NCBI GenBank assembly: GCA_946965045.2
Contig: OX337234.1
Location: forward strand, 310,001 to 374,000
Length of the DNA stretch: 64,000 bases
Reading direction: 5' to 3'
Source of the DNA: Epithemia pelagica
Lineage: Eukaryota; Protista; Bacillariophyta
The notes under the pieces were generated by a model. It was given only the letters and a program-made list of their open reading frames with translations, did no database searches and had not been told where the DNA came from. The translations under genes and the position numbers were made by a program. Below, piece after piece: positions 13,644-64,000 of this stretch. Every line of letters starts with the position of its first letter. Within the stretch, counting starts at the first letter, position 1.

Positions 13644-14768
13644 TTAGCTTGGAACTTTGCCCATCTCCAACAAACGTGCAAAGAGCCAACTCTTCTTGTC
13701 CACAAGTGACAGTGTTTCACACGAAATTCTGTTTCCACTACTTTGAGTAATCACAGCAAGAGTATTCGACAAGGATATCATACCACAAATATCCCTCCTT
13801 ACTGTCAAGTCCGGAAGCTCCCACAACATGTTTCTCACAGTATCCAAAACCTCCACAGCATATACGGAAAAAAAGCTGTCATCGCATCCTCCTGCAACAA
13901 CAAGACAGGAACCTACTTGGACTGCAAATAATCGAGCTCTCGGTTTTTTCAGAATGAGTTCCTTGTGGACGGTCCAGGACTTTGTGGACAATGCAACACT
14001 GGATGTGGCAGTGGGAGCATCCAACCAGTCATCAAACTCCAAGTATTCGACCGATTCCGGGCAACTGGCGATTCCCCACCCACCAACAGCATAGATGCGC
14101 GAACGAACCACAGCCATTGCAAGTCCGCTTCGACCTTCTTTCAACGAGGGCCCAGATACGACCGAATACGGGTTCCCAGATGCGGTATCCAAGATATCAA
14201 CCGATGATACACAATTATCGAGGATAGAACTGCTTCCGCCCGCCACCACAATAAATCGGTCAGAAACAGAAACAGCGGCGCAGCTTAATCGTTTACTCGT
14301 CAAACGACAATTCAACATCTTCCATCCATTGGAGCTGTTACTGCAAGAAGAGGAAGACGATGATGAATGAAGTAAATCGCCGACATGGATACGTTCAATA
14401 GTATCCAAGGCAGTGTCGCCGTTGTATCCACCAATGACGTAAACAGCGCCATTGCATACCACAGAAGCAAGATTTCTTCGTTTTTCTTGTAAAGGCGGTC
14501 CAGTTTGCCATCTTAAATCGCCAACGTTCATGAGACTAACCAAATTTGTTGCACCATCAGAAATAGGGTCCGGCCATCCTCCCGACAACACCAACAACTT
14601 GTCGCGGTTCATGGCTGGATGATGAACGACAACCGACGCATGGCCCCAAACATACCGCCCCAAGAGTGGAGTCCAATTTTCACTAGATGGCCTCCACTGC
14701 GGTTCCATTTCGTCCTTTCTGTCGGCAAAGACCAATCCCGACAAGACAGCTTGTTCCTGGATCGTCAT
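13644..14768 (-). CDS. Kelch-repeat beta-propeller protein, array copy 1
   Basis: Repeats with GG doublets and W (VYVIGGYNG, IVVAGG, IYAVGGW, LVVAGG; RWQTGPPLQEKR) and the family C-terminus LVDKKSWLFARLLEMGKVPS. ATG at 14768 chosen by alignment to paralogues. Confidence 0.9.
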   Translation of the reverse strand: MTIQEQAVLSGLVFADRKDEMEPQWRPSSENWTPLLGRYVWGHASVVVHHPAMNRDKLLVLSGGWPDPISDGATNLVSLMNVGDLRWQTGPPLQEKRRNLASVVCNGAVYVIGGYNGDTALDTIERIHVGDLLHSSSSSSSCSNSSNGWKMLNCRLTSKRLSCAAVSVSDRFIVVAGGSSSILDNCVSSVDILDTASGNPYSVVSGPSLKEGRSGLAMAVVRSRIYAVGGWGIASCPESVEYLEFDDWLDAPTATSSVALSTKSWTVHKELILKKPRARLFAVQVGSCLVVAGGCDDSFFSVYAVEVLDTVRNMLWELPDLTVRRDICGMISLSNTLAVITQSSGNRISCETLSLVDKKSWLFARLLEMGKVPS

Positions 14769-16290
14769 CCTTGTGGGCCTTGGACTTTTTGTTGTGGAAC
14801 AGGTCGAAAAGGTCGTTACTCTACGAGAAGTGCTTGCTTTTTTGTGGCACCAAGACCCGTTTGGGTGGGTGCACATTGTTCTCTCCAAGGAACAAGGTTG
14901 TGTTTCGACTGAATGTTTCGTTTTCGTTCCTGGGAACTTGTTGGCGGGTTCCTGGAATCTTCTTGGCGTTAACACAATTCGACCGATCCAAATCCATCAT
15001 AGATGCTGTGTTGGGAGAATCAGTCGCCGTGTCGAAGGGAAAGCAGCGGGTTGAGAGGACACACCTCGACGGATCACCAGAGGTGCTGATTCGCACTGGA
15101 TCCCAGACAGGCGTGACATGTGCGTCAGAATGCTTTTGAGTCGAGAACGGTTGCTTGATTCGTCTCAGAGGGCAATCCGATGGACGACGTCCGAGCATGC
15201 ATATCTGATGCGTCGTTTTAGAGTACCATTCTCTTGACAAACGATCCTATACATTACGGACATCCAATGTTTGGTCCAGGTTCCGAAAGATCTACAGCTT
15301 GGCCACCTCCGCAAACCAACATGGTGGTCTCCTCAGCACCGTCAAAAATCTTCCATCTCCACTACTTCCGCACAATCAATCACTACCTTGGCAGGGAGAT
15401 GTTCGCCATCGGCTCCATCTCAACTATCATTGTTACCACCCTAGCCCAAAAACAACAGGCGATTCTTTTGCGAGGACGACGGCGTCGACCGGAACCCTAG
15501 GGTGGTCGTATAAGTTGAAGTTGCAATCGGAATGTTCTGATACTTGCCCTTGACTGTTTTCGTTGCTTCTTTTGCACTGCAATGTGCAAAGGATCGAGTC
15601 GTCGAGAATCATTGAGTGTTCCCACACTGCCCGACAGCATACCATTTACATGCATACACATTCATCACTATTTGTATCCCAGGTACAATGGCTTTCTGTG
15701 TTCGTACATTCATATCAATTTTTTTGGTCCCATCGTAAAGACTATATCTGCACTCATGTCAGCACATTCGTGTTCTCCGATGTTTTTGCAACCAACTGTA
15801 CAGAGAGCTCCAAGCAAAGAACAGTCCCCACAATAATTCACCGCAGGATCAGAAAGATCAGAGCAAGGCGCATACGTGCACGTAGATGTATCTGCTGACA
15901 AAGTACAGTAGGTTCTCTCATGACACGTGTGAAACCAATTAGCTTGCAAGCAATCTGACAGGAATCACCTAACCAAGAACAGTCCGCTGTGTACACAAAA
16001 ATATCTCTCCATCGTTGACATCAAGGCGTGGAACATCCCAGCACCCTTCTCCATCGTCAGATCAACAACAGTAAATCTTTGCTTTCATATCGCTCCTGAC
16101 CCACTATGGCCTGGCTAATACGCTTGCAGGAATTTCCGTAACGAAAACAGACGTCTTTGCCATCTCATCGCTCTTCATCAGTGATGCAACCAGACCCAGT
16201 TATTTTTGCGATCACACCTCTCTTCACCAGAAATTGTATTTCAAGCAACCTTGCAGGAATCTACCATCCAAGAACATTCGTCTCTGCCCC

Positions 16291-16365
16291 GTGCACGTAT
16301 ATTCCTTGCAATGACATGAGCTCTGCTCTGCAACGCACATGTCATTGCAAGGAATATACGGGCAC
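16291..16365. repeat. Inverted repeat/hairpin (23 bp perfect arms at 16296-16318 and 16338-16360, 19 nt loop), recurring in array spacers
   Basis: CGTATATTCCTTGCAATGACATG ... CATGTCATTGCAAGGAATATACG. Related imperfect hairpins at ~21559-21637, 27809-27881, 34376-34448, ~37727-37803 and 49960-50034. Confidence 0.85.
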
Positions 16366-16868
16366 GCATAACGTTCCCAAGAACAGTCGAGTCTGTGCTC
16401 ACACACATGCGACATGATGGTTCGGCTCATTCAGGAGGTCTTGGAGGTCGGGGTCCACCGCTCACGCTGTCCTTGGTCCGAGAGGACGACTGACTCCCTA
16501 TTTTTTCTTGCCACGATGTTGTTCTGGATGCTTACCCGTTTGCACTCCTTATCACCATGAACCCTTCATGGTATTGTATCGTCCAGTGGGTGTTCCTGTG
16601 GTCCTAGCGGGCCGGCAGATGCAGTACTTGTTGGACAACGGTCCGTTCCAAGAGGGACCAAACTGTCTCGTTCAACGAAGCAAAATCACCCGATCCAGCA
16701 TCCAACCCTGCATGCTGTTATTGATCAGGATAGTTTCACTCTCTCATGGATAAAAGTTGCCCTCATTCACACAAGAGGACAATGACCTTCCACTCAAACG
16801 CAAGGCAGCAACCATAATATTAGGGGTATAGGAAAGTAGAAGTAGTAGTAGCAGTAGCACCATCAACA

Positions 16869-19148: not shown

Positions 19149-20273
19149 CTAGGTTGGAACTTTGCCGATCTCCAACAAACGTGCAAAGAGCCAACTCTTC
19201 TTATCCACAAGTGACAGTGTTTCACACGAAAACTCTTCTCGACTACTGCGACTAATCACAGCAAGAGTATTCGGCAAGGACACCAGGTCACAAACATGGT
19301 TCCTTACTGTCAAGTCCGGAAGCTCCCAAACCATGTTTCTCACAGTATCCAAAACCTCCACAGCATATACGGAAAAATAGCTGTCATCGCATCCTCCTGC
19401 AACAACAAGACAGGAACCCACTTGGACTACAGACAATCGAGCTCTCGGCATGTTCAAAATGAGTTTCTTGTGGATGGTCCAGGACTTTGTGGACAATGCG
19501 ACACTAGATGTGGCAGTGGGAGCATCCCACCAGTCGTCAAACTCCAGGTATTCGACAGATTCCCGGCAGGGGATACTCATCCCACACCCACCAATAGCAA
19601 AGATGCGTGAACCTACCACAGCCATTGCAAAACAACTTCGACCTTCTTTCAACGAGGGCCCAGATACGACCGAATACGGGTTCCCGGATGCCGTGTCCAG
19701 GATATCAACGGATGATAAAGGACTGCCGCTTCTAGAAATTCGTCCGCCCGCAGCCACAATAAATCGGTCACAAACAGCTACAGCGGCGCAGTTTAATCGT
19801 TTACTCGTCAAACGACAATTCAACATCTTCCATCCATTGGAGCTGTTACTGGAAGAAGAAGCTGATGATGAATGAACTAAATCGCCGACATGGATACGTT
19901 CAATAGTATCCAAGGCAGTGTGGCCATTGAATCCGCCAATGGCGTAAACAGCGCCATTGCATACCACGGAAGCAAGACTTCTTCGTTTTTCTTGTAGAGG
20001 CGGTCCAGTTTGCCACCTGTTCTCGCCAACGTTCCAGATACTAACCAAATCCGTTGCATCATAAAAAGACGTGCCCGGCCATCCTCCCAACAAAACCACC
20101 ATCTTGTCGTGGTTCGTGGCTGAATGATGAACGACAACCGACGCGTGGTTCCCCCCATGCAGTCCCATGAGTGGAGTCCTATTTTCACTAGATGGCCTCC
20201 ACTGCGGTTCTATTTCGTCCTTTCTGTCGGCAAAGACCAATCCTGACAACAACGCTTGTTCGTGGATCTTCAT
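19149..20273 (-). CDS. Kelch-repeat protein, array copy 2
   Basis: Intact 374 aa ORF colinear with copy 1. Confidence 0.9.
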   Translation of the reverse strand: MKIHEQALLSGLVFADRKDEIEPQWRPSSENRTPLMGLHGGNHASVVVHHSATNHDKMVVLLGGWPGTSFYDATDLVSIWNVGENRWQTGPPLQEKRRSLASVVCNGAVYAIGGFNGHTALDTIERIHVGDLVHSSSASSSSNSSNGWKMLNCRLTSKRLNCAAVAVCDRFIVAAGGRISRSGSPLSSVDILDTASGNPYSVVSGPSLKEGRSCFAMAVVGSRIFAIGGCGMSIPCRESVEYLEFDDWWDAPTATSSVALSTKSWTIHKKLILNMPRARLSVVQVGSCLVVAGGCDDSYFSVYAVEVLDTVRNMVWELPDLTVRNHVCDLVSLPNTLAVISRSSREEFSCETLSLVDKKSWLFARLLEIGKVPT

Positions 20274-23829: not shown

Positions 23830-24948
23830 TTAGCTTGGAACTTTGCCAATCTCCAACAAACGTGCAAAGAGCCAACTCTTCTTGTCCACAAGTGACAGTG
23901 TTTCACGCGAAAATTTTTTTCCACTACTGCGAGTAATAACAGTAAGAGTATTCGGCAAGGACACCAGGTCACAAACATAGTTCCTTACTGTCAAGTCCGG
24001 AAGCTCCCAAACTATGTTTCTCACAGTATCCAGAACTTCCACAGCATATAAAGATTTATAGCTGTCATCGCATCCTCCTGCAACAACAAGACAGGAACCC
24101 ACTTGAACTGCAGACAATCCAGCTCTCGACTCATTCAAAGTGAGTTTCTTGTGGATGGTCCAGGACTTTGTGGACAATGCGACACTGGATGTGGCAGTGG
24201 GAGCATCCAACCAATCATCAAACTCCAGGTATTCAACCGAATCCAGACAACTGGCGGTTCCCAACCCACCAACAGCATAGATGCGCGAACCAACCACAGC
24301 CATAACAAAATCGAATCGACATTCTTTCAACGATGGCCCAGATTTGACCGAATACGGGTTCCCGGATACCGTGTCCAGGATATCAACGGATGATAAGAAG
24401 GTCTCGACACCAAAAATGCATCCGCCCGCCACCACAATAAATCTGTCAGAAACAGATACAGCGGCGCAGCCATGTCGTTTACTCGTCAAACGACAATTCA
24501 TTATCTTCCATCCATTGGAGCTGTTGCCGGAAGAAGAAGATGATGAATGAAGTAAATCGCCGACATGGATACGTTCAATAGTATCCAAGGCAGTGTGGCC
24601 GTTGAATCCGCCAATGGCGTAAACAGCGCCATTGCATACCACGGAAGCAAGATCTCTTCGTTTTTCTTGTAAAGGCGGCCCCTTTTGCCACCTGTTTTCG
24701 CCAACGTTCATGAGACTAACCAAATTCGTTGGACCACCAGAAGTAGGTCCCGCCCATCCTCCCAACAACACCAACAACTTGTCGTGGTTCGTGGTTGGGT
24801 GATTAACGACAATCAACCCTTTGCCCCACTCATGCCGTCCCAAGAGTGGAGGCCACCTATCACTAGATGGCCTCCACTTTGGTTCTATTTTGTCCTTGCT
24901 GTCGGCAAAGACCAATCCTGACAACGAAGCTTGTTCCTGGACCTTCAT
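23830..24948 (-). CDS. Kelch-repeat protein, array copy 3
   Basis: Intact 372 aa ORF with the same repeat architecture. Confidence 0.9.
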   Translation of the reverse strand: MKVQEQASLSGLVFADSKDKIEPKWRPSSDRWPPLLGRHEWGKGLIVVNHPTTNHDKLLVLLGGWAGPTSGGPTNLVSLMNVGENRWQKGPPLQEKRRDLASVVCNGAVYAIGGFNGHTALDTIERIHVGDLLHSSSSSSGNSSNGWKIMNCRLTSKRHGCAAVSVSDRFIVVAGGCIFGVETFLSSVDILDTVSGNPYSVKSGPSLKECRFDFVMAVVGSRIYAVGGLGTASCLDSVEYLEFDDWLDAPTATSSVALSTKSWTIHKKLTLNESRAGLSAVQVGSCLVVAGGCDDSYKSLYAVEVLDTVRNIVWELPDLTVRNYVCDLVSLPNTLTVITRSSGKKFSRETLSLVDKKSWLFARLLEIGKVPS

Positions 24949-25545: not shown

Positions 25546-28373
25546 CAATGGAAGTCTATCGGTCATTGGAGAATCCTATGCACCGACAGTGTTTCCAGTT
25601 CACAGAGACCACCAACATAATGGAACACAATCCAGTCGAAAAGCGAGACTGTCGTCAAATTCCAATCGGCATCTTGAAGTACGAGTACGAAATCTAGGTC
25701 ACAAAAGACTTTTTTCGTATTCCACGACAAGGGATGGATGCGTATGCACTATCAAAACTTGGAATCGAAACTATTTATGAGCGACAAAAGGATGCCAAGA
25801 AGAAACTTTGACACGACAGCACCGATCGATCGAGATAGTTGTGGACCAAAAAGCTTTTCTATCCTCCACTGCTTTTCCACTGATTTTTCATCATTCTTCC
25901 CGTTGAACGTTGCAACAAGTCATGGCAATAAAAAGATTTCAATTCTTATCTACCTACCAGGGCCCGTAACCACAGAACCTCTTTCACCAAGGGTGTAAAG
26001 AAAAGCATGTGAATAAGCATGTTGTACTGATTCCAAACACTTGTCCGGGTTAAGATGGAACTTTGCCAATCTCCAACAAACGTGCAAAGAGCCAACTCTT
26101 CTTATCCACAAGTGACAGTGTTTCACACGAAAACTCTTCTCCACTACTGCGACTAATCACAGCAAGAGTATTCGGCAAGGACACCAAGCCACAAACACTC
26201 CTCCACGCTGTCAAGTCCGGAAGCTCCCAAACCATGTTTCTCACAGTATCCAAAACCTCCACAGCATATACGGATTGATAGCTGTAATCGGATCCTCCTG
26301 CAACAACAAGACAGGATCCCAATTGGACTGCAGTAAATCCAGCTCGCGACTTGTTCAAAATTAGTTCCTTGTGGACGGTCCAGGACTTTTTGGACAATGC
26401 GACAGTGGATGCGGCAGTGGGAGCATTCAACCAGTCATCAAACTCAAGGTATTCGACAGATTCCCGATAATCCAAGGGGAATATACTCCCACCACACCCA
26501 CCAATAGCAAAGATGCGTGAACCTACCACAGCCATTGCAAAAAAGCTTCGAACTTCGTTCAACGATGGCCCAGATACGACCACACACGGGTTCCCGGATG
26601 CCGTGTCCAGGATCTCAACGGATGATAAGTGACTGTCGCCAGAAATGCGTCCACCCGCCACCACAATAAATCTGTCACAAACAGCTACCGCCGCGCAGCC
26701 ATATCGTTTACTTGTCAAACGACACTTCAACATCTTCCATCCTTTGGAGCTGCTCTTGAAAGATGATGATGACGATGATGAAGGAAGTAAATCGCCGACA
26801 GGGAAACGTTCAATAGTATCCAAGGCAGTGTCGCCGTTGTCTCCGCCAATGGCGTAAACAGCGCCATTGCAAACAACGGAAGCAAGGTTTCTTCGTTTTT
26901 CTTGTAGAGGCGGTCCAGTTTGCCATCTTTTCTCGTCAACGTTCCAGAGACTAACCAAATTCGTTGGACCCCCAGAAATAGGTTCCGGCCATCCTCCCAA
27001 CAAAACCACCATCTTGTCGCGGTTCATGGCTGGATGATGAACAAGAACCGACGCATGGCCCCCCCTATGCCGCCCCATGAGTGAGGTCCAGTTTTCACTA
27101 GATGGCCTCCACTTCGGTTCTATTTCGTCCTTTCTGTCGGCAAAGACCAATCCTGACAGCAAAGCTTGTTCCTGGACCTTCATCCTTGTGGGCATTGGAC
27201 TTTTTTTGTGGAACAGGTCAACAGGTTCTTTGTTCGTCTCAAGGAGCGCTTTCTTTTTCTGGCATCGAGAAACGTTTTTTCATGGATGTGTTTTGACTGA
27301 CTGGTAAGTTCTCGGTCCTTAGCTCTGAAGGTTATTGGTGATGACGATTGATTCGTGCTTGTTTTCCATCGAACACAATTTGACCGATCCAAATCCATCA
27401 TACATGTTGCGTTGGGAGAGTTCGAAGGGAAATAAGCGGAGCGGTTTCGATGGTTGAGAAGACACACCTCGACGGATCAGACAATAGGTGCTGATTCGCG
27501 CGTGACATGTGCTCGTTGAACTGTCCTAGTGGATCGATTGTTTTTTTCAGCGGACAACGGTTGCTTGATTCGTCTCCGAGGGCATTTCGATGGACGACGT
27601 CTTAGAATGCATATTTCCTCCTCCTTCTTTCTTGCCACTGAAATTGGTGTCATTGCTTTTCCGATTCATTTGCTACAATGACCAGTTGTCCATACCATCT
27701 GTGCAACATCTAGAGAATATGCAATCACAGCTCTCGTCATCATTAGCAATGGTCCGGCAAGCATCCTAGCAGGAATCTACCAGCCAAGAACACATTCGTC
27801 TCTGTCCCGTGCAAGGATATTTCTTGGAATGACCGGAGCGCTACTCTGCAACTCCTGCCATTGCAAGGAATATACTTGCACGAGTGTATGCTCGCCGAAT
27901 ACTTGTGTGCAATAAGGATGAAGAAAAGGACCATTCGTAGACGAAATACCATCCCAAATACAAACGCCTGCTGTAGAATCATCAGAGTCTTTGCGACCAG
28001 TCAGGTATCTGCCATCGAAATTCCAACCGTCTGCTCCAGAACAACACACTCTTTTGGTTCCCTTCAGGGGCCGAGGTCTCCACCAATGCCTACTACGCAT
28101 TGCCGAACGAGCTGCTCGGAACGTTGGCGACTCTTTGTATTAAAGAGACAGACCACCCAGCCAAGCCTCCACGATTCCTGGACCCCGACCTTCACGGATC
28201 TCCAGAAGGAGCCGAACCATCATCCCACAGCATCGTGCGGCTCATTCGGGAGGTCGTGAAGGTTGGGGTCCACCGTTCCATACATAGTACCCCAAAAGGA
28301 CAAAAACAACAACCACAAGAGCCTCCCATCACGACCACTCCCTCTCTTTTGGCCAAGATCTTGTTGTGGTTGT
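25546..28373. repeat. Recent segmental duplication, unit A (near-identical to 32110-34940)
   Basis: Offset ~6564-6567 bp. Flanking shadow ORFs are identical (e.g. 25738..25998 = 32302..32562). Unit B lacks ~0.93 kb equivalent to 28374-29300 and then matches 29300-30040 again. Confidence 0.9.
26050..27195 (-). CDS. Kelch-repeat protein, array copy 4
   Basis: Intact 381 aa ORF. Confidence 0.9.
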   Translation of the reverse strand: MPTRMKVQEQALLSGLVFADRKDEIEPKWRPSSENWTSLMGRHRGGHASVLVHHPAMNRDKMVVLLGGWPEPISGGPTNLVSLWNVDEKRWQTGPPLQEKRRNLASVVCNGAVYAIGGDNGDTALDTIERFPVGDLLPSSSSSSSFKSSSKGWKMLKCRLTSKRYGCAAVAVCDRFIVVAGGRISGDSHLSSVEILDTASGNPCVVVSGPSLNEVRSFFAMAVVGSRIFAIGGCGGSIFPLDYRESVEYLEFDDWLNAPTAASTVALSKKSWTVHKELILNKSRAGFTAVQLGSCLVVAGGSDYSYQSVYAVEVLDTVRNMVWELPDLTAWRSVCGLVSLPNTLAVISRSSGEEFSCETLSLVDKKSWLFARLLEIGKVPS

Positions 28374-29147: not shown

Positions 29148-29149
<2 letters not shown>

Positions 29150-29185
<36 letters not shown>

Positions 29186-29186
29186 G
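29150..29186 (+). repeat. (ACA)n microsatellite
   Basis: About 12 uninterrupted ACA units. The paralogous site near 50905 has only a few. Confidence 0.85.
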
Positions 29187-30037: not shown

Positions 30038-31177
30038 TTAGCTTGGAACTTCGCCGATCTCCAACAGACGTGCAAAGAGCCAACTCTTCTTGTCCACAAG
30101 TGAAAGCGTTTTACACGAAAACTCTTCTCCACTACTGCGAGTAATCACAGCAAGAGTATTCGACAAGGACAACAGGCCACAACCACCCCACTTCTCTGTC
30201 AAGTCCGGAAGCTCCCAAACCATGTTTCTCACAGTATCCAAAACCTCCAAAGCATATACGGTTTTACCGTTGTCATCGCATCCTCCTGCAACAACAAGAC
30301 AGGAACCCAATTGGACCGCAGAAAATACCACTTGGCCTGGAGAAACTACAATTCTCGGCTTGCTCAAAACGAGTTTCTTGTGGACGGTCCAAGACTTTGT
30401 CGACAATGCGACAGTGGATGTGGCAGGATCCAACCAGTCATCAAACTCAAGGTATTCGACCGAATCCAGGCATCTGGCGAACAGATTCCGCCACCCACCA
30501 ACAGCATAGATGCGTGGACCTACCACAGCCATAACAAAGTCGCTTCGACCTACGTTCAACGATGGCCCAGATACGACCGAATACGGGTTCCCAGATGCCG
30601 TGTCCAGGATCTCAACGGATGATAAGTGACGGTCGCCAGAAATGCGTCCACCCGCCACCACAATAAATCTGTCAGAAACAGCTACAGCGGCGCAGCCCTT
30701 GCGTTTACTCGTCAAACGACACTTCAGCATCTTCCATCCCTTGGTGCTGATGCTGGAAGAAGAACATGATGATGAATAATGAAGTAAATCGCCGACATGG
30801 ATACGTTCAATAGTATCCAAGACAGTGTGGCCATTGAATCCGCCAATGACGTAAACAGCGCCATTGCATACCACGGTAGCAAGGTTTCTTCGTTTTTCTT
30901 GTAGAGGCGGTCCATTTTGCCACCTATTCTCCCCAACATTCCAGAGACTAACCAAATTTGTTGGACAAGAAAGTCGACCTCCCAACACAATCACCATCTT
31001 GTGGTTCATGGCTGGATGATGCACGAGTACCAACCCGTAGCCCCACACATGCCGTCCCAAGAGTGGAGGCCCAATATTACTAGATGGCCTCCATTGCGGT
31101 TCTATTTTGTCCTTGCTATCGGCAAAGACCAATCCTGACAACGAAGCTTGTTCCTGGATCTTCATCTTTGAGGGCAT
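30038..31177 (-). CDS. Kelch-repeat protein, array copy 5
   Basis: Intact ORF. ATG at 31177 (MPSKMKIQEQ) by alignment. It carries a short insertion (IVVSPGQVV) shared with copy 9. Confidence 0.9.
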   Translation of the reverse strand: MPSKMKIQEQASLSGLVFADSKDKIEPQWRPSSNIGPPLLGRHVWGYGLVLVHHPAMNHKMVIVLGGRLSCPTNLVSLWNVGENRWQNGPPLQEKRRNLATVVCNGAVYVIGGFNGHTVLDTIERIHVGDLLHYSSSCSSSSISTKGWKMLKCRLTSKRKGCAAVAVSDRFIVVAGGRISGDRHLSSVEILDTASGNPYSVVSGPSLNVGRSDFVMAVVGPRIYAVGGWRNLFARCLDSVEYLEFDDWLDPATSTVALSTKSWTVHKKLVLSKPRIVVSPGQVVFSAVQLGSCLVVAGGCDDNGKTVYALEVLDTVRNMVWELPDLTEKWGGCGLLSLSNTLAVITRSSGEEFSCKTLSLVDKKSWLFARLLEIGEVPS

Positions 31178-32109: not shown

Positions 32110-34940
32110 CAATGAAAGTCTATCGGTCATTGGAGAATCCTATGCACCGACAGTGTTTCCAGTTCACAGAGACCACCAACATAATGGAACACAATCCAGT
32201 CGAAAAGCGAGACTGTCGTCAAATTCCAATCGGCATCTTGAAGTACGAGTACGAAATCTAGGTCACAAAAGACTTTTTTCGTATTCCACGACAAGGGATG
32301 GATGCGTATGCACTATCAAAACTTGGAATCGAAACTATTTATGAGCGACAAAAGGATGCCAAGAAGAAACTTTGACACGACAGCACCGATCGATCGAGAT
32401 AGTTGTGGACCAAAAAGCTTTTCTATCCTCCACTGCTTTTCCACTGATTTTTCATCATTCTTCCCGTTGAACGTTGCAACAAGTCATGGCAATAAAAAGA
32501 TTTCAATTCTTATCTACCTACCAGGGCCCGTAACCACAGAACCTCTTTCACCAAGGGTGTAAAGAAAAGCATGTGAATAAGCATGTTGTACTGATTCCAA
32601 ACACTTGTCCGGGTTAAGATGGAACTTTGCCAATCTCCAACAAACGTGCAAAGAGCCAACTCTTCTTATCCACAAGTGACAGTGTTTCACACGAAAACTC
32701 TTCTCCACTACTGCGACTAATCACAGCAAGAGTATTGGGCAAGGACACCAAGCCACAAACACTCCTCCACGCTGTCAAGTCCGGAAGCTCCCAAACCATG
32801 TTTCTCACAGTATCCAAAACCTCCACAGCATATACGGATTGATAGCTGTAATCGGATCCTCCTGCAACAACAAGACAGGAACCCAATTGGACTGCAGTAA
32901 ATCCAGCTCGCGACTTGTTCAAAATTAGTTCCTTGTGGACGGTCCAGGACTTTTTGGACAATGCGACAGTGGATGGGGCAGTGGGAGCATTCAACCAGTC
33001 ATCAAACTCAAGGTATTCGACAGATTCCCGGCAATCCAAGGGGAATATACTCCCCCCACACCCACCAATAGCAAAGATGCGTGAACCTACCACAGCCATT
33101 GCAAAAAAGCTTCGAACTTCGTTCAACGATGGCCCAGAAAGGACTGAATACGGGTTCCCGGATGCCGTGTCAAGTATATCAACGGATGATAAAGGACTGT
33201 CGTTTGTAGAAATTTGTCCGCCCGCCACCACAATAAATCTGTCACAAACAGCAACAGCGGCGCAGCCATGTCGTTTACTCGTCAAACGACAATTCATCAT
33301 CTTCCATCCATTTGAGCTGTTACTGGAAGAAGATGATGACGATGATGAAGGAAGTAAATCTCCGACAGGAATACGTTCAATAGTATCCAAGGTAGTGTGG
33401 CCATTGAATCCGCCAATGACGTAAACAGCGCCATTGCATACCACAGAAGCAAGATTTCTTCGTTTTTCTTGTAAAGGCGGTCCTGTTTGCCATCTTTTCT
33501 CGTCAACGTTCCAGAGACTAACCAAATTCGTTGGACCCCCAGAAATAGGTTCCGGCAATCCTCCCAACAAAACCACCATCTTGTCGCGGTTCATGGCTGG
33601 ATGATGAACAAGAACCGACGCATGGCCCCCCATATGCCGCCCCATGAGTGAGGTCCAGTTTTCATTAGATGGCCTCCACTTCGGTTCTATTTCGTCCTTT
33701 CTGTCGGCAAAGACCAATCCTGACAGCAAAGCTTGTTCCTGGACCTTCATCCTTGTGGGCATTGGACTTTTTTTGTGGAACAGGTCAACAGGTTCTTTGT
33801 TCGTCTCAAGGAGCGCTTTCTTTTTCTGGCATCGAGAAACGTTTTTTCATGGATGTGTTTTGACTGACTGGTAAGTTCTCGGTCCTAAGCTCTGGAGGTT
33901 ATTGGTGATGACGATTGATTCGTGCTTGTTTTCCATCGAACACAATTTGACCGATCCAAATCCATCATACATGTTGCGTTGGGAGAGTTCGAAGGGAAAT
34001 AAGCGGAGCGATTTCGATGGTTGAGAAGACACACCTCGACGGATCAGACAATAGGTGCTGATTCGCGCGTGACATGTGCTCGTTGAACTGTCCGAGTGGA
34101 TCGATTGTTTTTTTCAGCGGACAACGGTTGCTTGATTCGTCTCCGAGGGCATTTCGATGGACGACGTCTTAGAATGCATATTTCCTCCTCCTTCTTTCTT
34201 GCCACTGAAATTGGTGTCATTGCTTTTCCGATTCATTTGCTACAATGACCAGTTGTCCATACCATTTGTGCAACATCTAGAGAATATGCAATCACAGCTC
34301 TCGTCATCATTAGCAATGGTCCGGCAAGCATCCTTGCAGGAATCTACCAGCCAAGAACACATTCGTCTCTGTCCCGTGCAAGGATATTTCTTGGAATGAC
34401 CGGAGCGCTACTCTGCAACTCCTGCCATTGCAAGGAATATACTTGCACGAGTGTATGCTCGCCGAATACTTGTGTGCAATAAGGATGAAGAAAAGGACCA
34501 TTCGTAGACGAAATACCATCCCAAATACAAACGCCTGCTGTAGAATCATCAGAGTCTTTGCAACCAGTCAGGTATCTGCCATCGAAATTCCAACCGTCTG
34601 CTCCAGAACAACACACTCTTTTGGTTTCCTGCAGGGGCCGAGGTCTCCACCAATGCCTACTACGCATTGCCGAACGAGCTGCTGGGAACGTTGGCGACTC
34701 TTGGTATTAAAGAGTCAGACCACCCAGCCAAGCCACCACGATTCCTGGACCCCGACCTGCACTAATCTCCAGAATGAGCCGAACCATCATCCCACAGCAT
34801 CGTGCGGCTCATTCGGGAGGTCGTGAAGGTTGGGGTCCACCGTTCCATACATAGTACCCCAATAGGACAAAAACAACAACCACAAGAGCCTCCCATCACG
34901 ACGACTCCATCTCTTTTGGCCAAGATCTTGTTGTGGTTGA
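32110..34940. repeat. Recent segmental duplication, unit B (copy of 25546-28373)
   Basis: See unit A. Confidence 0.9.
32614..33762 (-). CDS. Kelch-repeat protein, array copy 6 (mosaic of copies 4 and 7)
   Basis: Intact 382 aa ORF. Both ends match copy 4; the central ~350 bp match copy 7. Confidence 0.9.
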   Translation of the reverse strand: MPTRMKVQEQALLSGLVFADRKDEIEPKWRPSNENWTSLMGRHMGGHASVLVHHPAMNRDKMVVLLGGLPEPISGGPTNLVSLWNVDEKRWQTGPPLQEKRRNLASVVCNGAVYVIGGFNGHTTLDTIERIPVGDLLPSSSSSSSSSNSSNGWKMMNCRLTSKRHGCAAVAVCDRFIVVAGGQISTNDSPLSSVDILDTASGNPYSVLSGPSLNEVRSFFAMAVVGSRIFAIGGCGGSIFPLDCRESVEYLEFDDWLNAPTAPSTVALSKKSWTVHKELILNKSRAGFTAVQLGSCLVVAGGSDYSYQSVYAVEVLDTVRNMVWELPDLTAWRSVCGLVSLPNTLAVISRSSGEEFSCETLSLVDKKSWLFARLLEIGKVPS

Positions 34941-43492: not shown

Positions 43493-44639
43493 ATGAGCAT
43501 GACACTGAAAGAACAAGCATGGCAGTCGGGCCTTGTCCTTTTCAACGAGACAGCACAATGGAATGAAAACGACTGGCCTCCTCTTGTGGGAGGAGCGCGC
43601 AATCATCATGCTACGGTCGTACTCGATCATCCTGATAAGGAGAACGACAACAACAACAACAACAACAAGAAACAAACGGTCGTCGTGTTGGGAGGATGGC
43701 AACAAGGTCAAGGCTTTGTCAAATCCGTTATTGTATTAAATTTAGAAGAATCAAACAAGCAGTGGCGAGAAGGGCCACCCATGAACAAGATACGTCGTGG
43801 ACATGCCGCTGTTGTTTGCAATGGAAGTGTCTACGTGATGGGAGGATACAAGATAGAAGGAGGATATTTGGATTGTATCGAACAAATTGATGTCAGTGAA
43901 TTGCTGCAATCATCTTTAACAAACAGCAACACACATGCGAGTAATTGGACGACATTAACTTGTCGATTATCAACGCAGCGATGGGGATGTTGTGCTGTTG
44001 CGGTTCTCAATCGATACATCGTTGTAATGGGTGGACGCAGGAGTGTGCAATACTTGTCGTCGATTGAGATTATTGATACCCGCCACCACGCTGTTATAGC
44101 AGGACCAAGCATGACTGTTCCTCGACAATTCTGTGCCAGTGCGGTCATTGGTCACCGCATTTTTGTCGTTGGAGGAGGCGACAACGAGCATGACAATTTT
44201 GACTCGGTGGAGTATTTGGACTTTGCAATGGACGACAATCTGACTACAGCCATTTCCTTCTCGTCCGCTTGGACCATTCACCCTGATTTGGTACGTTCCG
44301 ACCATCGTTCCTCTTGTACAGTGGTTACCGTGGGATCTTGTCTGGTGGTGCCGGGAGGACGAGGCAATTTTAGTGTGGAAGTCTTGGATACGCACCACAA
44401 CCGTGTGTGGAATCTCCCACCATTCGTGGATTACCGCAGTGGCTGCAGTATGGTGACTGTTGCCAATCATGTTGCCGTGATTGGTGGATGGGACAATCCT
44501 ACCTGTGCGACATTGCCACTAATCGACAAGAATACGTGGTGTTTTTCGTCGACTCTGTGAGCAGCAGCCCAACGGATGGTACCATTTTCGGGAAGCAATG
44601 GTAGTTCGCCCCTCCACCTTGACCTCAAAATCTGAATGA
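43493..44639 (+). CDS. Divergent kelch-repeat protein, array copy 8 (opposite strand; apparent +1 frameshift near C-terminus)
   Basis: MSMTLKEQAWQSGLVLF aligns to the family start MKVQEQALLSGLVF, and six GG-bearing blades follow. The ORF stops at 44560. Removing one T from the T5 run at 44542-44546 restores WCFRRLCEQ (family WLFARLLE) with a stop at 44639. Confidence 0.85.
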
Positions 44640-44874: not shown

Positions 44875-46018
44875 TTAGGTTGGAACTTTGCCGATCTCCA
44901 ACAAACGTGCACAGAGCCAACTCTTCTTGTCCACAAGTGATAGTGTTTTACACGAAAACTCTTCTCCACTACTGCGAGTAATCACAGCAAGAGTATTCGA
45001 CAAGGACAACAGGCCACAACCACCCCACTTCTCTGTCAAGTCCGGAAGCTCCCAAACCATGTTTCTCACAGTATCCAAAACCTCCAAAGCATATACGGTA
45101 TTACCGCTGTCATTACATCCTCCTGCAACAACAAGACAGGAACCCAATTGGACCGCAGAAAATACCACTTGGACTGGAGAAACTGCAATTCTCGGCTTGT
45201 TCAAAATGAGTTCTTGTGGATGGTCCAAGACTTTGTGAACAATGCGACACTGGATATGGCAGTAGGCGCATCCAATCAGTCATCAAACTCAAGGTATTCG
45301 ACCGAATCCAGGCATCTGGCGAACAGCCGCCACCCACCAACAGCATAGATGCGTGGACCTACCACAGCCATTGCAAAAAAGCTTCGACCTACGTTCAACG
45401 ATGGCCCAGATACGACCGAATACGGGTTCCCGGATGCCGTGTCCAGGATATCAACGGATGATAAAGGACTGTCGCCAGAAATGCGTCCACCCGCCACCAC
45501 AATAAACTGTCAGAAACAGCTACAGCGGTGCAGCCCTTGCGTTTACTCGTCAAACGACACTTCAGCATCTTCCATCCCTTGGTGCGGTTGCTGGAAAAAG
45601 AACATGATGATGAATTATGAAGTAAATCGCCGACATTGATACGTTCAATCGTATCCAAGACATTTTGGCCATTGAATCCGCCAATGGCGTAAACAGCGCC
45701 ATTGCATACCACGGTAGCAAGGTTTCTTCGTTTTTCTTGTAAAGGCGGTCCATTTTGCCACTTTTTCTCGCCAACGTTCATGAGACTGACCAAATTTGTT
45801 GGACCATCAGAAGTAGGTGCCGCCCATCCTCCCAACACAATCACCATCTTGTCGTGGTTAATGGCTGGATGATGAACGACAACCGACGCATGGCCCCACA
45901 AATGCCGTTCCATGAGTGGAGTCCAATTTGCACTAGATGGCCTCCACTGCGGTTCTATTTCGTCCTTTCTGTCGGCAAAGACCAATCCTGACAACAATGC
46001 TTGTTCCTGGACCTTCAT
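44875..46018 (-). pseudogene. Kelch-repeat array copy 9, two 1-bp deletions
   Basis: Missing base at ~45506 (AATAAACTGT vs AATAAATCTGT) and at ~45212 (GAGTTCTTG vs GAGTTTCTTG). This splits the gene into ORFs 45395..46018, 45276..45500 and 44875..45228. Assembly error cannot be excluded. Confidence 0.8.
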
Positions 46019-47884: not shown

Positions 47885-49018
47885 TTAAGATGGAACTTTG
47901 CCGATCTCCAACAAACGTGCAAAGAGCCAACTCTTCTTATCCACAAGTGACAGTGTTTCACACGAAAACTCTTCTCCACTACTGCGACTAATCACAGCAA
48001 GAGTATTCGGCAAGGACACCAGGTCACAAACACTCCTCCTCTTTGTCAAGCCCGGAAGCTCCCATACCATGTTTCTCACAGTATCCAAAACCTCCACAGA
48101 ATGAACGTCTTCATACCTGTCGCCGAATCCTCCTGCAACAACCAGACAGGAACCCACTTGGACTGCAGAAAATACAGCTCTCGGCTTGTTCAAAATGAGT
48201 TTCTTGTGGATGGTCCAGGACTTTGTGGACAATGCGACACTGGATGTGGCAGGATCCAACCGGTCATCAAACTCCAGGTATTCGACCGATTCTAGGCAAC
48301 AAAAGGGGTATATACTCCCACACCCACCAATAGCAAAGATGCGTGAACCTACCACAGCCATAACAAAGTCGCTTCGACCTTCTTTCAACGACGGCCCAGA
48401 TACGACCGAATACGAGTTCCCGGATGCCGTGTCCAAGATATCAACGGATGATAAGCAATTGTCGCTACGAAAAACGCATCCGCCCGCCACCACAATAAAT
48501 CTGTCAGAAACAGCGACAGCGGCGAAGTCTAATCGTTTACTCGTCAATCGGCAATTCAACATCTTCCATCCCTTTGTGTTGTTGCCAAAAGAAGAAGACG
48601 ATGAATGAAGCAAGTCGTCGACAGGGATACGTTCAATTGTATCCAAGACAGTTTGGCCGTTCCATCCTCCAATGGCGTAAACAGCGCCGTTGCAAACCAC
48701 GGCAGCAAGACTTGCTCGTTTTTCTTGTAAAGGCGGTCCAGTTTGCCATCTTTTCTCGCCAACGTTCAAGAGACTAACCAAATTTGTTGGACCACCAGAA
48801 GTAGGTTCCGGCCATCCTCCCAACAACACCAACGACTTGTCGTGGTTTGTGGCTGGATGATTAACGACAACCAACCCTTTGCCCCACACATGCTGTCCTA
48901 ATCGTGGAGGCCAAATACTACTAGATGGCCTCCAATGTGGTTCGGTTTTGTCCTTGCTATCGACAAAGGCCAATTCTGACAACGAAGCTTGTTCCTGGAT
49001 CTTCATCCTTGTGGGCAT
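47885..49018 (-). CDS. Kelch-repeat protein, array copy 10
   Basis: Intact ORF; ATG at 49018 (MPTRMKIQEQ). Confidence 0.9.
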   Translation of the reverse strand: MPTRMKIQEQASLSELAFVDSKDKTEPHWRPSSSIWPPRLGQHVWGKGLVVVNHPATNHDKSLVLLGGWPEPTSGGPTNLVSLLNVGEKRWQTGPPLQEKRASLAAVVCNGAVYAIGGWNGQTVLDTIERIPVDDLLHSSSSSFGNNTKGWKMLNCRLTSKRLDFAAVAVSDRFIVVAGGCVFRSDNCLSSVDILDTASGNSYSVVSGPSLKEGRSDFVMAVVGSRIFAIGGCGSIYPFCCLESVEYLEFDDRLDPATSSVALSTKSWTIHKKLILNKPRAVFSAVQVGSCLVVAGGFGDRYEDVHSVEVLDTVRNMVWELPGLTKRRSVCDLVSLPNTLAVISRSSGEEFSCETLSLVDKKSWLFARLLEIGKVPS

Positions 49019-51752: not shown

Positions 51753-52895
51753 CTAGGTTGGAACTTTGCCGATCTCGAACAAACGTGCAAAGAGCCAACT
51801 CTTCTTATCCAAAAGTGACAGTATTTCACATGAAAACTCTTCTCCACTACTGTGACTAATCACAGCAAGAGTATTCGACAAAGACACCAGGTCACAACCA
51901 CCCCTCCTCTTTGTCAAGTCCGGAAGCTCCCAAACCATGTTTCTAACAGTATCCAAAACCTCCACAGCATAGACGGATTTATAGCTGTCATCGTATCCTC
52001 CTGCAACAACCAGACAGGAACCCACTTGGACTGCAGAAAATCCAGCTCACGACTTGTTCAAAATGAGTTCCTTGTGGACGGTCCAGGACTTTGTGGACAA
52101 TGTGACACTGGATGTGGCAGTGGGAGCATCCAACCAGTCATCAAACTCCAGGTATTCGACCGATTCTTGGCAACAAAGGGGGTATATACTCCCACACCCA
52201 CCCAAAGCATAGATGCGTGAACCTACCACAGCCATGGCAAAATCGCTTCGACCTTCTTTCAACGATGGTCCAGATGCGACCAAACATGGGTTCCCAAATG
52301 CCGCGTCCAAGATATCAACGGATGATAAGCAATTGTCGTAACAAGAAATGCATCCGCTCGCCACCACAATAAATCTGTCAGAAACAGCGACAGCGGCGCA
52401 GCCAACTCGTTTACTCGTCAATCGACAATTCAACATCTTCCATCCATTGGAGCTGTTCCTGGAAGATAACGAGGATGATGAAGGAAGTAACTCGCTGACA
52501 TGGATACGTTCAATAGTATCCAAGGCAGTGTGGCCGTTGTATCCACCAATGGCGTAAACAGCGCCATTGCATACCACGGAAGCAAGATTTCTTCGTTTTT
52601 CTTGTAAAGGCGGTCCAGTTTGCCATCTTGAATCGCCAACGTTCCAGAGACTAACCAAATTCGTAGGACCATCAGAAGAAGGTTCCGGCCATCCTCCCAA
52701 CAAAACCACCATCTTGTCGCGGTTCATGGCTGGATGATGAACAAGAACCGACGCATGGCCCCACACATGCCGCCCCATGAGTGGAGTCCAATTATCGCTA
52801 GATGGCCTCCACTGTGGTTCTATTTCGTCCTTTCTGTCGGCAAAGACCAATCCTGACAACGAAGCTTGTTCCTGGATCTTCATCCTTGTTGACAT
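51753..52895 (-). pseudogene. Kelch-repeat array copy 11, single nonsense mutation
   Basis: TGA at 52049-52047 where paralogues have CGA/CAA (NKSRAGF/NKSQAGF). The frame continues unbroken to the normal C-terminus at 51753. Confidence 0.85.
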
Positions 52896-56691: not shown

Positions 56692-56793
56692 CTGTCAATA
56701 TATTATATTTACCAAAATGCACTGCGATTATGGATGTATAGTTTCCGTGACGTTTCTTCCATTGTCACCTTCAGTGACGTTCGTGGTCGGAGA

Positions 56794-59940: not shown

Positions 59941-59955
59941 TTGCAGACACGAAAA

Positions 59956-61783: not shown

Positions 61784-62911
61784 TTAGCTTGGAACTTTGC
61801 CGATCTCCAAAAAACGTGCAAAGAGCCAACTCTTCTTATCCACAAGTGACAGTGTTTCACACGAAAACTCTTCTCCACTACTGTGACTAATCACAGCAAG
61901 AGTATTCGACGAAGACACCAGGTCACAACCACCCCTCCTCTTTGTCAAGTCCGGAAGCTCCCAAACCAGGTTTCTCACAGTATCCAAAACCTCCACAGCA
62001 AATACGGATTGATAGCTGTCATCGCATCCTCCTGCAACGACAAGACAGGAGCCCACTTGGACTGCAGAAAATACAGCTCTCGACTTGTTCAAAACGAGTT
62101 TCTTGTGGACGGTCCAAGACTTTGTCGACAATGCGACAGTGGATGCGGCAGTAGGAGCATCCAACCAGCCATCAAACTCCAGGTATTCGACAGATTTCAG
62201 GCAACTGGCGAAAAGTGTTTTCCACCCACCAACAGCATAGATGCGTGGACCTACCACAGCTAAAGCAAAAGCGCTTCGACCTTCTTTCAATGGTGGCCCA
62301 GATACGACCGAATACGGATTCCCAGATGCCGTATCCAGGATCTCCACGGATGATAAGCAATTGTCGTATCCAGAAATGCATCCGCCCGTCACCACAATAA
62401 ATCTGTCGGAAACAGCGACAGCCGCGCAGCCATATCGTTTACTGGTCAAACGACAATTCAACATCTTCCATCCCGTGGAGCTGTTACTGCAAGATGATGA
62501 TGATGAAGGAAGTAAATCGCCGACATGGATACGTTCAATAGTATCCAAGGCAGTTCGGCCATTGTGTCCGCCAATGGCATAAACAGCGCCATTGCATACC
62601 ACGGAAGCAAGTCTTCTTCGTTTTTCTTGTAAAGGCGGTCCAGTTTGCCATCTTGAATCGTCAACGTTCCAGAGACTTACTGAATTTGTTGCACCATGAA
62701 CCGGCCATCCTCCCAACAAAACCACCATCTTGTCGCGGTTCATGGCTGGATGATGAACAAGAACCGACGCATGGCCCCCCATATGCCGCCCCATGAGTGT
62801 AGTCCAGTTTTCACTAGATGGCCTCCACTGTGGTTCTATTTTGTCCTTGCTGTCGGTAAAGACCAATCCTGACAACAACGCTTGTTCCTGAACCTTCATA
62901 CTTGCGGGCAT
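61784..62911 (-). CDS. Kelch-repeat protein, array copy 12
   Basis: Intact ORF; ATG at 62911 (MPASMKVQEQ). Upstream spacer modules continue to the window edge, so the array may extend further. Confidence 0.9.
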   Translation of the reverse strand: MPASMKVQEQALLSGLVFTDSKDKIEPQWRPSSENWTTLMGRHMGGHASVLVHHPAMNRDKMVVLLGGWPVHGATNSVSLWNVDDSRWQTGPPLQEKRRRLASVVCNGAVYAIGGHNGRTALDTIERIHVGDLLPSSSSSCSNSSTGWKMLNCRLTSKRYGCAAVAVSDRFIVVTGGCISGYDNCLSSVEILDTASGNPYSVVSGPPLKEGRSAFALAVVGPRIYAVGGWKTLFASCLKSVEYLEFDGWLDAPTAASTVALSTKSWTVHKKLVLNKSRAVFSAVQVGSCLVVAGGCDDSYQSVFAVEVLDTVRNLVWELPDLTKRRGGCDLVSSSNTLAVISHSSGEEFSCETLSLVDKKSWLFARFLEIGKVPS

Positions 62912-64000
62912 TGGACTTTTTTTGTGGAACAGGTGAAAAAGGTCCTTTTCCTCTGCGTGGGGCGCTTTCTTTTTGTGGCACAAAGACGAGTTTTGGTGGG
63001 TGCTTGTTGTTCCCTCCAAAGAAACAATATGTGTTTTGGATGTGTTCCGATTGACTGTTGCGTTCTCGTTCCTGGAATCTGAAGGTTATGGGGGTTGGCG
63101 TTGACTACGACTGATTCGTGCTCGTTCTTTATCCAACATCATTCGACCGATCCAAATCAGTCATATGTTGGGAAAGTCAGCCACTGATTGGAAGGGAAAG
63201 CAGTGGAGCGGTTTCGATGGTTGAGAGGAGACACCTCGACGGATCACAAGAGGTGCTGATTCGCACCGGATCCCAGGCAGGTGTGGCATGTCTGTCCGAA
63301 TGGATCGATTGCCTTTTCAGCAGACAACGGTTGCTTGATTCGTCTCCGAGGGCATTTAGAGGGATGCCGTCTTAGAATGCATAACTGATGCGTCGCTTCA
63401 TAGCACGATTCATGGTAGATAAGACAATCACCTTCGACATCACGGATTTCCAATATTCGGTCCAGGTCCCGACCTATCCACAACTTTGCCACCTCGGAAA
63501 TCCACCATGATGGCCTTCTGAGCGCCGTCACATACATCTTCCATGTCGGTTGCTTTTTTGGCACAATCAATCACCACCCCAACAGGGATATCTTGGCGAT
63601 TCTTCTTGCGAGCACGATGGCGACGAAGAGAAACCATCCCCTTGTCTTGATTGCTTCTTCTTCTTCCTCCTCCTTATTTCTTGCCACTACCCACTTCCGG
63701 AAGGGAATCGGCGTCCATCGTTCGAAAAGTAGCCAGAACGGCCCTGGGTGTCCTTCCAACAAGTACTATAGAACAAGAATGACATCCATTCCATCATCAG
63801 TACTGCAGACTCAACCGAACGAACCACGAAACAACGGGGCAGAACCATCGCTGCAGAGATGGATTGGGGTGTCGTCAGAACTTGTAGATTGGAAAAACTG
63901 GGCGATCGTCTCAATCGTGGACAGGAATTTGACTCCATGAAGCAGATCTCGTTCCCATGGCGGTAATCTTGCAAGATGTTGTTGTAGAGTGTTGGGGACA

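Follow-up and report, generated by a model that had tools for sequence, protein, structure and literature searches.

Does a tandem array of Kelch genes in the diatom Epithemia pelagica encode a set of proteins that recognise changing targets, or has its variation simply accumulated by drift? An earlier note on this DNA had described twelve copies with hypervariable loops on one propeller face and had suggested a diversifying recognition repertoire. The recognition of viruses, bacteria, parasites and mating partners by diatoms is, to our knowledge, little understood, and for none of these has a variable receptor family been implicated. The Kelch family described here would be a concrete candidate, with its hundreds of intact genes, its positively selected face, its alleles made by conversion and its mixing with TIR-domain genes. 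It would also offer natural examples of the re-specification of a Kelch pocket on a fixed scaffold, which would be useful to binder design. Should drift in a region prone to duplication account for all of this, the family would still be a warning case for the use of dN/dS in recombining tandem families. In the literature searched, no paper was found on Kelch arrays in diatoms or describing the Kelch family of the array. The window referred to below is the whole stretch of DNA that was analysed (64,000 nucleotides).

Copies, duplication and exchange

The twelve copies of the earlier note were recovered by tblastn (query 19149-20273, minus strand) as eleven close minus-strand paralogues, with 71-80% amino acid identity, and one plus-strand copy at 39% (Table 1). 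Ten of the twelve are intact and two, k09 and k11, are broken. The genes of the array are intron-less, about 374 amino acids long and Kelch-only. In k05 the loop of blade 1 is short and there is a 7-residue insertion ahead of blade 5, and in the mosaic k07 the partner (k01, k06 or k11) changes with the gene segment. The probable start Met of k08 lies about 40 nt into its ORF. The identity of this copy to the array copies is 39%, but over 100 members of the main subfamily match it at 64-70%; it is a member of the genome's largest Kelch subfamily and not a diverged member of the array. The same genome carries a silicon transporter.

Table 1. Kelch copies and the LRR-TIR gene in the window.
Feature	Position	Strand	Remarks
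k01, Kelch copy	13644..14768	-	Intact; 374 aa counted from conserved Met
k02, Kelch copy	19149..20273	-	Intact; chosen for structure model
k03, Kelch copy	23830..24948	-	Intact
k04, Kelch copy	26050..27183	-	Intact; inside recent 2.9-kb duplication
k05, Kelch copy	30038..31165	-	Intact
k06, Kelch copy	32614..33750	-	Intact; recent duplicate of k04
k07, Kelch copy	35693..36829	-	Intact; mosaic
LRR(RNI-type)-TIR gene	39099..42539	-	1146 aa; within Kelch array, head-to-head with k08
k08, Kelch copy	43451..44560	+	Intact; larger subfamily
k09, Kelch pseudogene	44878..46018	-	Two frameshifts, near 45500-45509 and 45210-45216
k10, Kelch copy	47885..49006	-	Intact
k11, Kelch copy, broken	51753..52883	-	One premature TGA at 52047-52049, rest in frame
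k12, Kelch copy	61784..62899	-	Intact

Birth-and-death evolution, as previously proposed, is borne out by tandem and segmental duplications, by the two pseudogenes among the twelve copies and by the hundreds of Kelch paralogues across the genome. The recent 2.9-kb duplication joins 25440-28372 to 31990-34939 at 96.5% identity. The DNA upstream of the copies diverges neutrally and contains indels, and so gives no sign of a conserved upstream exon. A transposon origin was set aside, as the copies have in common only short flanks which diverge at the neutral rate.

Gene conversion in the array is strong (PHI p=0.0005), and the trees of different segments are discordant. The two haplotypes seen differ by 2-6% in the array genes, and the allele of k02 on the other haplotype has 89% protein identity. 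Outside discrete patches the alleles are 99-100% identical; within them the sequence is closer to another paralogue than to the copy at its own locus. Judged from these patterns, ectopic gene conversion between copies, a process missing from the earlier note, is the main engine of diversity. Variants arise via tandem duplication, point mutation and short-tract conversion between paralogues, and the outcome is mosaic genes and strongly differing alleles on the two haplotypes.

The public sequencing comprises four runs from one study, of a type not stated, kept as Logan contigs, and includes no run recorded as RNA. In one of the four, X4, the coverage pattern resembles that of transcripts, which is suggestive only; contigs from X4 match k03 exactly. 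In metagenomes no close relative was found: the matches were to generic Kelch proteins whose identity was 22-29%, reaching 30-44% in a few short matched segments. A second assembly contains a relative at 36-45%.

Domain content and predicted fold

In all seven copies scanned against Pfam, the Kelch_1 score was 62-117 bits (cut-off 20.1), and Kelch_KLHDC2_KLHL20_DRC7 exceeded its cut-off of 50. No BTB, BACK or F-box domain was found at E<=0.1, with the longest possible ORF extensions included, and the N-terminus, judged by eye on the sequence, carries no hydrophobic signal-type segment. The Pfam matches are to Kelch families only, in agreement with the earlier statement that no BTB, F-box or signal peptide is evident. 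In the AF2 model the N-terminus is part of the fold.

The model of k02 (pLDDT 87.4, pTM 0.89) shows a six-bladed propeller in which the N-terminal strand completes the last blade, and each blade contributes variable sites. The assignment of top and bottom faces rests on the strand topology of this model. The C-terminal helix, whose conservation was rightly pointed out before, occupies residues 358-368 of k02 and is modelled confidently; it may simply be structural, and not the adaptor-binding motif proposed as possible in the earlier note. Foldseek placed designed SAKe6 Kelch propellers at the top of its PDB matches, followed by the Kelch domains of KLHL3, KLHL20 and Keap1, with target-normalised TM-scores of 0.75-0.86 and E-values of about 1e-17 to 1e-19 among the matches listed. 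The ESM Atlas gave generic KLHL-type clusters, and phmmer alignments against the PDB cover single repeats only. As part of the explanation preferred below, and to be weighed together with it, the sequences and the model suggest that the array copies are probably cytosolic, stand-alone six-bladed Kelch propellers.

Such propellers could also be housekeeping-type adaptors, ie ubiquitin-ligase receptors whose docking motif has escaped recognition, or Kelch enzymes of the oxidase or epimerase type, diversified in either case for endogenous substrates and not for non-self. The nearest solved natural folds are indeed those of CRL3 substrate receptors, a docking element might be formed by the conserved motif at the N-terminus and the C-terminal helix, and there are weak, sub-threshold matches to NanM (NANM, only 14.6-26.5 bits, cut-off 45) and to glyoxal oxidase (Glyoxal_oxid_N, 24 bits, cut-off 37.5). 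However, no BTB, BACK, F-box or signal peptide was found, and no enzyme-family match above its cut-off, and hundreds of copies, a binding-face omega above 1 and conversion patches between haplotypes are untypical of receptors for endogenous substrates. We consider a housekeeping role improbable.

Selection on scaffold, loops and single residues

All the loop strings quoted in the earlier note are present in the alignment, and the variable columns do concentrate after each GG doublet and beside the conserved Arg. Its description of the strands as nearly invariant was too strong: they are conserved relative to the loops, but their dN/dS is 0.42 (CI 0.28-0.60), and the bottom loops give an equal value. 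Gene-wide, dN/dS is 0.59 with dS about 0.21, and between the alleles of the two haplotypes omega is 0.75-1.0. The scaffold of the array proteins, ie beta-strands, bottom loops, N-terminal closure and C-terminal helix, is under purifying selection, from which it seems likely that the proteins are made and folded. Ten of the twelve ORFs have stayed open in spite of the dS of about 0.21.

The BC and DA loops of the top face, taken whole, have an omega of 0.87 (CI 0.64-1.19), which is not above 1, so that the loops as such are not positively selected. In the BC loops dS is itself raised, at 0.28 compared with 0.18. These averages suit neutral birth-and-death ('genomic drift'), in which the family grows by tandem duplication, the scaffold is kept for folding, the loops are merely unconstrained and the variation is non-adaptive. 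The whole-loop interval spans 1, the gene-wide and allelic values do not exceed 1, two of the twelve copies are pseudogenes, and large plant F-box families have reportedly been read as genomic drift in one study.

Codon site models (M1a versus M2a) were fitted with separate trees per segment because gene conversion is strong. Their branch lengths were nucleotide lengths, scaled and then kept fixed, and the synonymous rate was taken as constant. With 1, 3 and 6 segment trees, 2dlnL was 89.7, 56.4 and 38.3, respectively, and M2a gave an omega2 of 3.7-4.8 in 4-10% of sites. When all gap-adjacent columns were taken out 2dlnL was 24.4, and for 21 close paralogues it was 125, with an omega2 of 3.0 in 14.6% of sites. 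Of 27 sites with P>0.9, 25 fall in BC or DA loops and all six blades are represented. The enrichment is far beyond chance (Fisher p=2e-11), as these loops account for about one third of the columns. Five of the 27 lie in the length-variable loop of blade 4, and some selected columns are in an indel-rich loop. Site models mapped on a predicted structure had been proposed as a check, with M7 versus M8; the comparison of M1a with M2a favours M2a, and by strand topology the sites are on the BC/DA face.

An independent clade on other chromosomes (C13/C10) gave a 2dlnL of 115 and an omega2 of 4.8. At the sites picked in that clade, a tree-free estimate of dN/dS in the window was 1.46 (n=16, P(<=1)=0.035), and 1.65 for a wider set (n=34, CI 1.20-2.27, P(<=1)=0.002). 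The lower bound for the strict set is 0.97, and the excess over 1 is modest. Sites outside the picked sets have a dN/dS of 0.51-0.57 in the window. Measured against local dS the ratios at the picked sites still exceed 1 (0.300/0.180 and 0.339/0.229), and the dN of 0.30-0.34 at these cross-validated sites is higher than the divergence of the upstream flanks (K=0.24), which is near dS. The signal is carried by about 15-30 codons.

Positive selection might be mimicked by gene conversion, by misaligned indel-rich loops or by local mutation input. Recombination is strong, the likelihood ratio falls from its one-tree to its six-tree value, dS is raised in the BC loops, and five sites sit in the blade-4 loop of variable length. 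Nevertheless, the signal persists with six segment trees and without the gap-adjacent columns, and pairwise estimation without a tree, at sites picked in other genes, still gives a value above 1, also against local dS, leaving only a slight chance that the method created it. Drift, too, fits poorly with the preference for M2a over the nearly-neutral M1a under all tree schemes, and with the picking of the same structural positions in an independent clade, dN there exceeding both dS and flank divergence in the window. Furthermore, the selected sites are on one face only and not in all loops, the bottom loops being constrained like strands. Drift is in our judgement unlikely, if somewhat less so than an artefact.

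Diversifying selection on the ligand face, as claimed in the earlier note, is supported for a subset of loop residues (site-model omega 3-4.8 in 4-15% of sites, 1.46-1.65 on cross-validation) and not for the BC and DA loops as a whole. A loop dN/dS at or below 1, explained by relaxed constraint, had been named as evidence against that claim; the whole loops stand at this level, and the subset lies above it. The result, to be weighed jointly with the explanation that follows, is that a small number of residues in each blade outpace synonymous change; they lie in the BC loop, behind the GG doublet, and in the DA loop, by the conserved Arg.

A candidate binding repertoire and its relatives

Our preferred explanation, which we hold with somewhat better than even confidence, is that a constrained scaffold, selected BC/DA residues and variants made by conversion together constitute a binding repertoire. 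The substrate surface of KLHL20 is built from its BC and DA loops (PMC6720452). Since the substrate face of solved Kelch domains is made of these loops, each copy probably has a peptide or protein of its own as ligand, and the Kelch family would be a germline-encoded binding repertoire following changing targets.

The Kelch array surrounds the LRR-TIR gene at 39099..42539, and 16 of the 18 LRR-TIR loci of the genome have Kelch genes nearby, one 10-kb flank having been examined per locus. In Pfam searches the Kelch polypeptide itself has no signalling or death domain; LRR-TIR genes are physically linked at those 16 of 18 loci. This linkage could arise because both kinds of gene lie in distal chromosome regions that are prone to duplication. 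The presence of LRR-TIR genes inside the Kelch arrays suggests that the targets may be non-self. One might speculate that they come from a virus, a bacterium, a parasite or other cells of the same species, and that the propellers act ahead of TIR signalling as sensors, decoys or adaptors. A role in immune or effector recognition is more speculative than the binding repertoire, linkage to the LRR-TIR genes being its sole support. In its fullest form the proposal would be an undescribed innate recognition system in this lineage of diatoms, in which hundreds of germline-encoded, stand-alone Kelch propellers with conversion-shuffled, selected pockets act as variable sensors or decoys feeding the LRR-TIR proteins of the same arrays, ie a cytosolic immune or allorecognition repertoire on a fold new to such use; this we regard as doubtful.

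Large lineage-specific expansions are known in plant Kelch-repeat F-box (KFB) and other ubiquitin-adaptor families, and some lineage-specific members are under positive selection. The KFB families resemble the diatom family in this expansion of Kelch-containing proteins, whereas the array is without an F-box, intron-less, tightly tandem and linked to LRR-TIR genes. In the KLHL and KBTBD receptors, N-terminal BTB and BACK domains bind Cul3. The array proteins share with the Kelch domains of KLHL20, KLHL3 and Keap1 the six blades and a GG doublet which closes strand B, and the loops which vary in the array are the substrate-surface BC and DA loops of those domains. Compared to these BTB-Kelch CRL3 receptors, however, they have 17-22% sequence identity, no BTB or BACK, and an extra conserved N-terminal helix-strand and C-terminal helix; their genes are in tandem, with hundreds of paralogues and positively selected face residues.

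Diversifying recognition repertoires are exemplified by the LRRs of plant NLRs and by fungal HNWD genes. A parallel in mode of evolution may be drawn with the HNWD non-self recognition family (het-d/het-e) of Podospora anserina, whose genes encode NACHT-WD40 proteins with a few positively selected surface residues per repeat, exchange between paralogues and some pseudogenes (PMC1805685). Both are beta-propeller repeats with diversifying selection on an interaction surface, paralogue exchange and pseudogenes. The HNWD propellers are of the WD40 type, encoded by about 10 genes and fused to NACHT and HET domains, whereas those of the array are Kelch, number in the hundreds and stand alone. Exchange homogenises the HNWD repeats within genes, but the blades within an array protein are unlike one another, and any signalling partner of the array would be the product of a separate, linked LRR-TIR gene.

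Kelch copies in the window and in the genome

With k02 as query, tblastn identified eleven minus-strand copies in the window at 71-80% amino-acid identity and a twelfth, k08, on the plus strand at 39%, and the twelve kelch copies described in an earlier note were thus borne out. Nine of the minus-strand copies and k08 are intact. Each copy is a single ORF of about 374 aa from a conserved Met. Pfam matched them to Kelch families only, and no BTB, BACK or F-box was found, even when the longest upstream ORF extensions were included. Nucleotide identity between copies is approximately 81-92%, mostly 83-88%, and the array contains a recent duplication of 2.9 kb (96.5% identical). k08 is not a decayed array member: it shares 64-70% identity with over 100 proteins belonging to the largest Kelch subfamily of the genome.

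The window spans 310001-374000 of contig C7 in the Epithemia pelagica assembly (60.5 Mb, 23 contigs). Across that assembly the first-look search gave at least 862-875 Kelch candidates. All 110 scored matches had E<1e-59; nearly all were full-length open frames, and most lay in arrays whose genes are spaced a few kilobases apart. As expected of a diatom, the genome has silicon-transporter genes (PF03842), of which at least 12 are full-length. At the 50% identity level an exhaustive protein search returned 96 clusters with E<=1e-30, whose sampled members all came from ENA assemblies. JGI metagenomes yielded generic Kelch proteins only, with 22-29% identity in the fuller matches and 30-44% in a few short segments. 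Locus L101 of a second assembly (ENA ERZ25042306 ctg3324l) encodes a full-length relative, 36% identical to k02 and at most 45% to any copy in the Epithemia pelagica genome; its N-terminal motif is kept, its C-terminal helix is absent, and no array is evident over the 11 kb covered. The family thus extends beyond a single assembly. Its large expansion has been documented in the Epithemia pelagica genome only, and full-text literature searches gave no account of such a Kelch family in diatoms.

The public sequencing runs on record include no RNA run. One of them, X4, of unspecified type, assembles to 39 Mb of short contigs, which match k03 exactly and extend 156 nt upstream of its ATG. Over window positions 23500-29499 X4 covers the coding regions of the Kelch genes plus some 150 nt upstream and is nearly blank over intergenic 25100-25900 and 27900-29100, both of which the three other runs cover. 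This pattern is no more than a hint of a transcriptome, as the run is of unspecified type and paralogue contigs pile up on the coding regions.

Features of the window and of the collinear locus L001
Feature	Position	Strand	Remarks
k02	19149-20273	-	search query and modelled copy
k03	23830-24948	-
k05	30038-31165	-
k09	44878-46018	-	two frameshifts
k11	51753-52883	-	one premature TGA
LRR(RNI-type)-TIR gene	39099-42539		head-to-head with k08; enclosed by array
303-aa ORF	46278-47189	-	between k09 and k10
hAT-type transposase ORF (1048 aa, Dimer_Tnp_hAT) and adjoining HhH-GPD glycosylase-domain ORF (613 aa)	54850-59940		split array between k11 and k12
Repeated intergenic units	28192-29306 and 50011-51049		86% identical
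Insertion, 4.5 kb	L001:2812-7322		absent from window
Insertion, 6.3 kb	L001:12461-18803		absent from window; 1361-aa RVT_2 (Copia) ORF

The propeller and its variable loops

The AlphaFold2 model of k02, made with a family alignment of 101 sequences, had a pLDDT of 87.4 and a pTM of 0.89. It has six blades of four strands each, with a GG doublet after strand B in five of the six. The sixth blade is closed by an N-terminal strand (residues 12-14) preceded by a short helix, and the C-terminal helix spans residues 358-368. The sole low-confidence stretch is a poly-Ser insertion in the blade 2 CD loop. This tract (k02 residues 134-147) is on the bottom face and is present in all copies at varying length. 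The top Foldseek matches in the PDB were designed SAKe6 Kelch propellers, followed by the Kelch domains of KLHL3, KLHL20, KLHL12 and Keap1; among the matches listed, target-normalised TM was 0.75-0.86 and identity 17-22%.

The loop variation reported earlier was confirmed. The loops described as following each GG are the BC loops, and the residues described as Arg-adjacent sit where the DA loops end. BC and DA loops together build the substrate surface of KLHL20 (PMC6720452). The earlier note also offers a possible immune or effector-recognition role for the family and a possible adaptor-binding role for its C-terminal helix.

Selection and recombination among copies

Pairwise means across copies were dN 0.122, dS 0.208 and omega 0.59 (Nei-Gojobori). 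Codons were then partitioned by the strand topology of the model, without use of variability. Omega was 0.42 for strands (CI 0.28-0.60) and 0.42 for the bottom AB and CD loops, so the scaffold is under purifying selection. It was 0.85 for BC loops, 0.89 for DA loops and 0.87 for the whole top face (CI 0.64-1.19), and the loops taken whole are therefore not above 1. Synonymous divergence over k01-k12 codons reaches 0.28 in BC loops, compared with 0.18 in strands; loop segments may coalesce deeper, mutation or conversion input may act locally, or some misalignment may persist.

Recombination among the copies is strong: the PHI statistic was 0.394, compared with 0.513±0.008 under permutation (p=0.0005), and the gene thirds give discordant trees. 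Site models were fitted with our own codon-likelihood program, using F3x4 frequencies and a separate, freely scaled ML tree for each segment. For the window set M2a was favoured over M1a with 2dlnL of 89.7, 56.4 and 38.3 for 1, 3 and 6 segments, and omega2 was 3.7-4.8 in 4-10% of sites. After all gap-adjacent columns were dropped 2dlnL was 24.4 (p=5e-6) and omega2 3.6. Addition of 11 close paralogues from elsewhere on contigs C7 and C2 (21 sequences, 6 segments) gave 2dlnL = 125, with omega2 3.0 in 14.6% of sites. Sites with P>0.9 fell in BC or DA loops in 25 of 27 cases, over all six blades (Fisher p=2e-11), and these sites show enrichment of Tyr, Phe, His, Gln, Cys and Gly.

An independent clade of nine genes, located on contigs C13 and C10 and sharing about 55% identity with those of the window, also favours M2a (2dlnL = 115, omega2 4.8). 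In a non-circular test, sites were chosen in that clade and tree-free pairwise dN/dS was measured in the window array. It was 1.46 (CI 0.97-2.13, P(<=1)=0.035) for the 16 sites with P>0.9, 1.65 (CI 1.20-2.27, P(<=1)=0.002) for the 34 with P>0.5, and 0.51-0.57 outside the chosen sets. At the chosen sites dN (0.30-0.34) is higher than dS and than the K of 0.24 in the 250 bp of upstream flank that could be aligned, which relaxed constraint should not produce by itself; the margin is modest, and few codons contribute to it. The earlier proposal of diversifying selection thus finds support at a small number of top-face residues and fails for the loops as a whole.

Locus L001 (ENA ERZ21939226 ctg1288l) is collinear with window 16004-25756 except for extra insertions that it carries, and represents either the other haplotype or a very closely related strain. 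Assemblies of DNA-type runs from the organism come to about 120 Mb, some two times the size of the genome. In the flanks the haplotypes are only 90-98% identical. Allelic dN/dS is 0.75 for k03 and 1.00 for k02. Compared in 90-nt bins, the alleles agree at 99-100% along most of the gene, with a few patches at 83-90% where another paralogue fits better; the clearest such patch is around the blade-1 loop in the k02 allele (94% to k05, 83% to k02). Such patches indicate mosaic alleles made by short-tract ectopic gene conversion between array members. Together with tandem and segmental duplication and occasional gene death, this describes a recombining birth-and-death family.

Neighbouring genes and comparison with known systems

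The LRR-TIR gene within the array, which with its head-to-head neighbour k08 takes up window 39099-44560, lacks an NB domain and has paralogues at about 18 genome loci. Sixteen of the 18 adjacent 10-kb flanks fetched there hold at least one Kelch-family gene. This amounts to 30 Kelch genes in 180 kb of flank, compared with a density of roughly one candidate per 69 kb in the genome at large. That baseline is approximate, since candidates were counted as a minimum and both families tend to lie distally on contigs. The 303-aa ORF had no Pfam match at E<=0.01. Long ORFs in the repeated intergenic units, with poly-Val, poly-Cys and poly-Asn/Ser runs, are probably low-complexity DNA, not genes.

The fold resembles that of KLHL Kelch domains and, judged from the model, the variable residues would fall on the matching substrate face. 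However, BTB/BACK and F-box, the modules defining KLHL and KFB proteins, are missing, and the window copies are therefore members of neither. The closest analogue in evolutionary mode is the fungal HNWD family of Podospora, in which positive diversifying selection acts on a few surface residues of each WD40 repeat and paralogues swap repeats with one another (PMC1805685). The diatom family differs in being Kelch, not WD40, in its stand-alone proteins, in its hundreds of genes, and in having LRR-TIR genes that are separate but linked.
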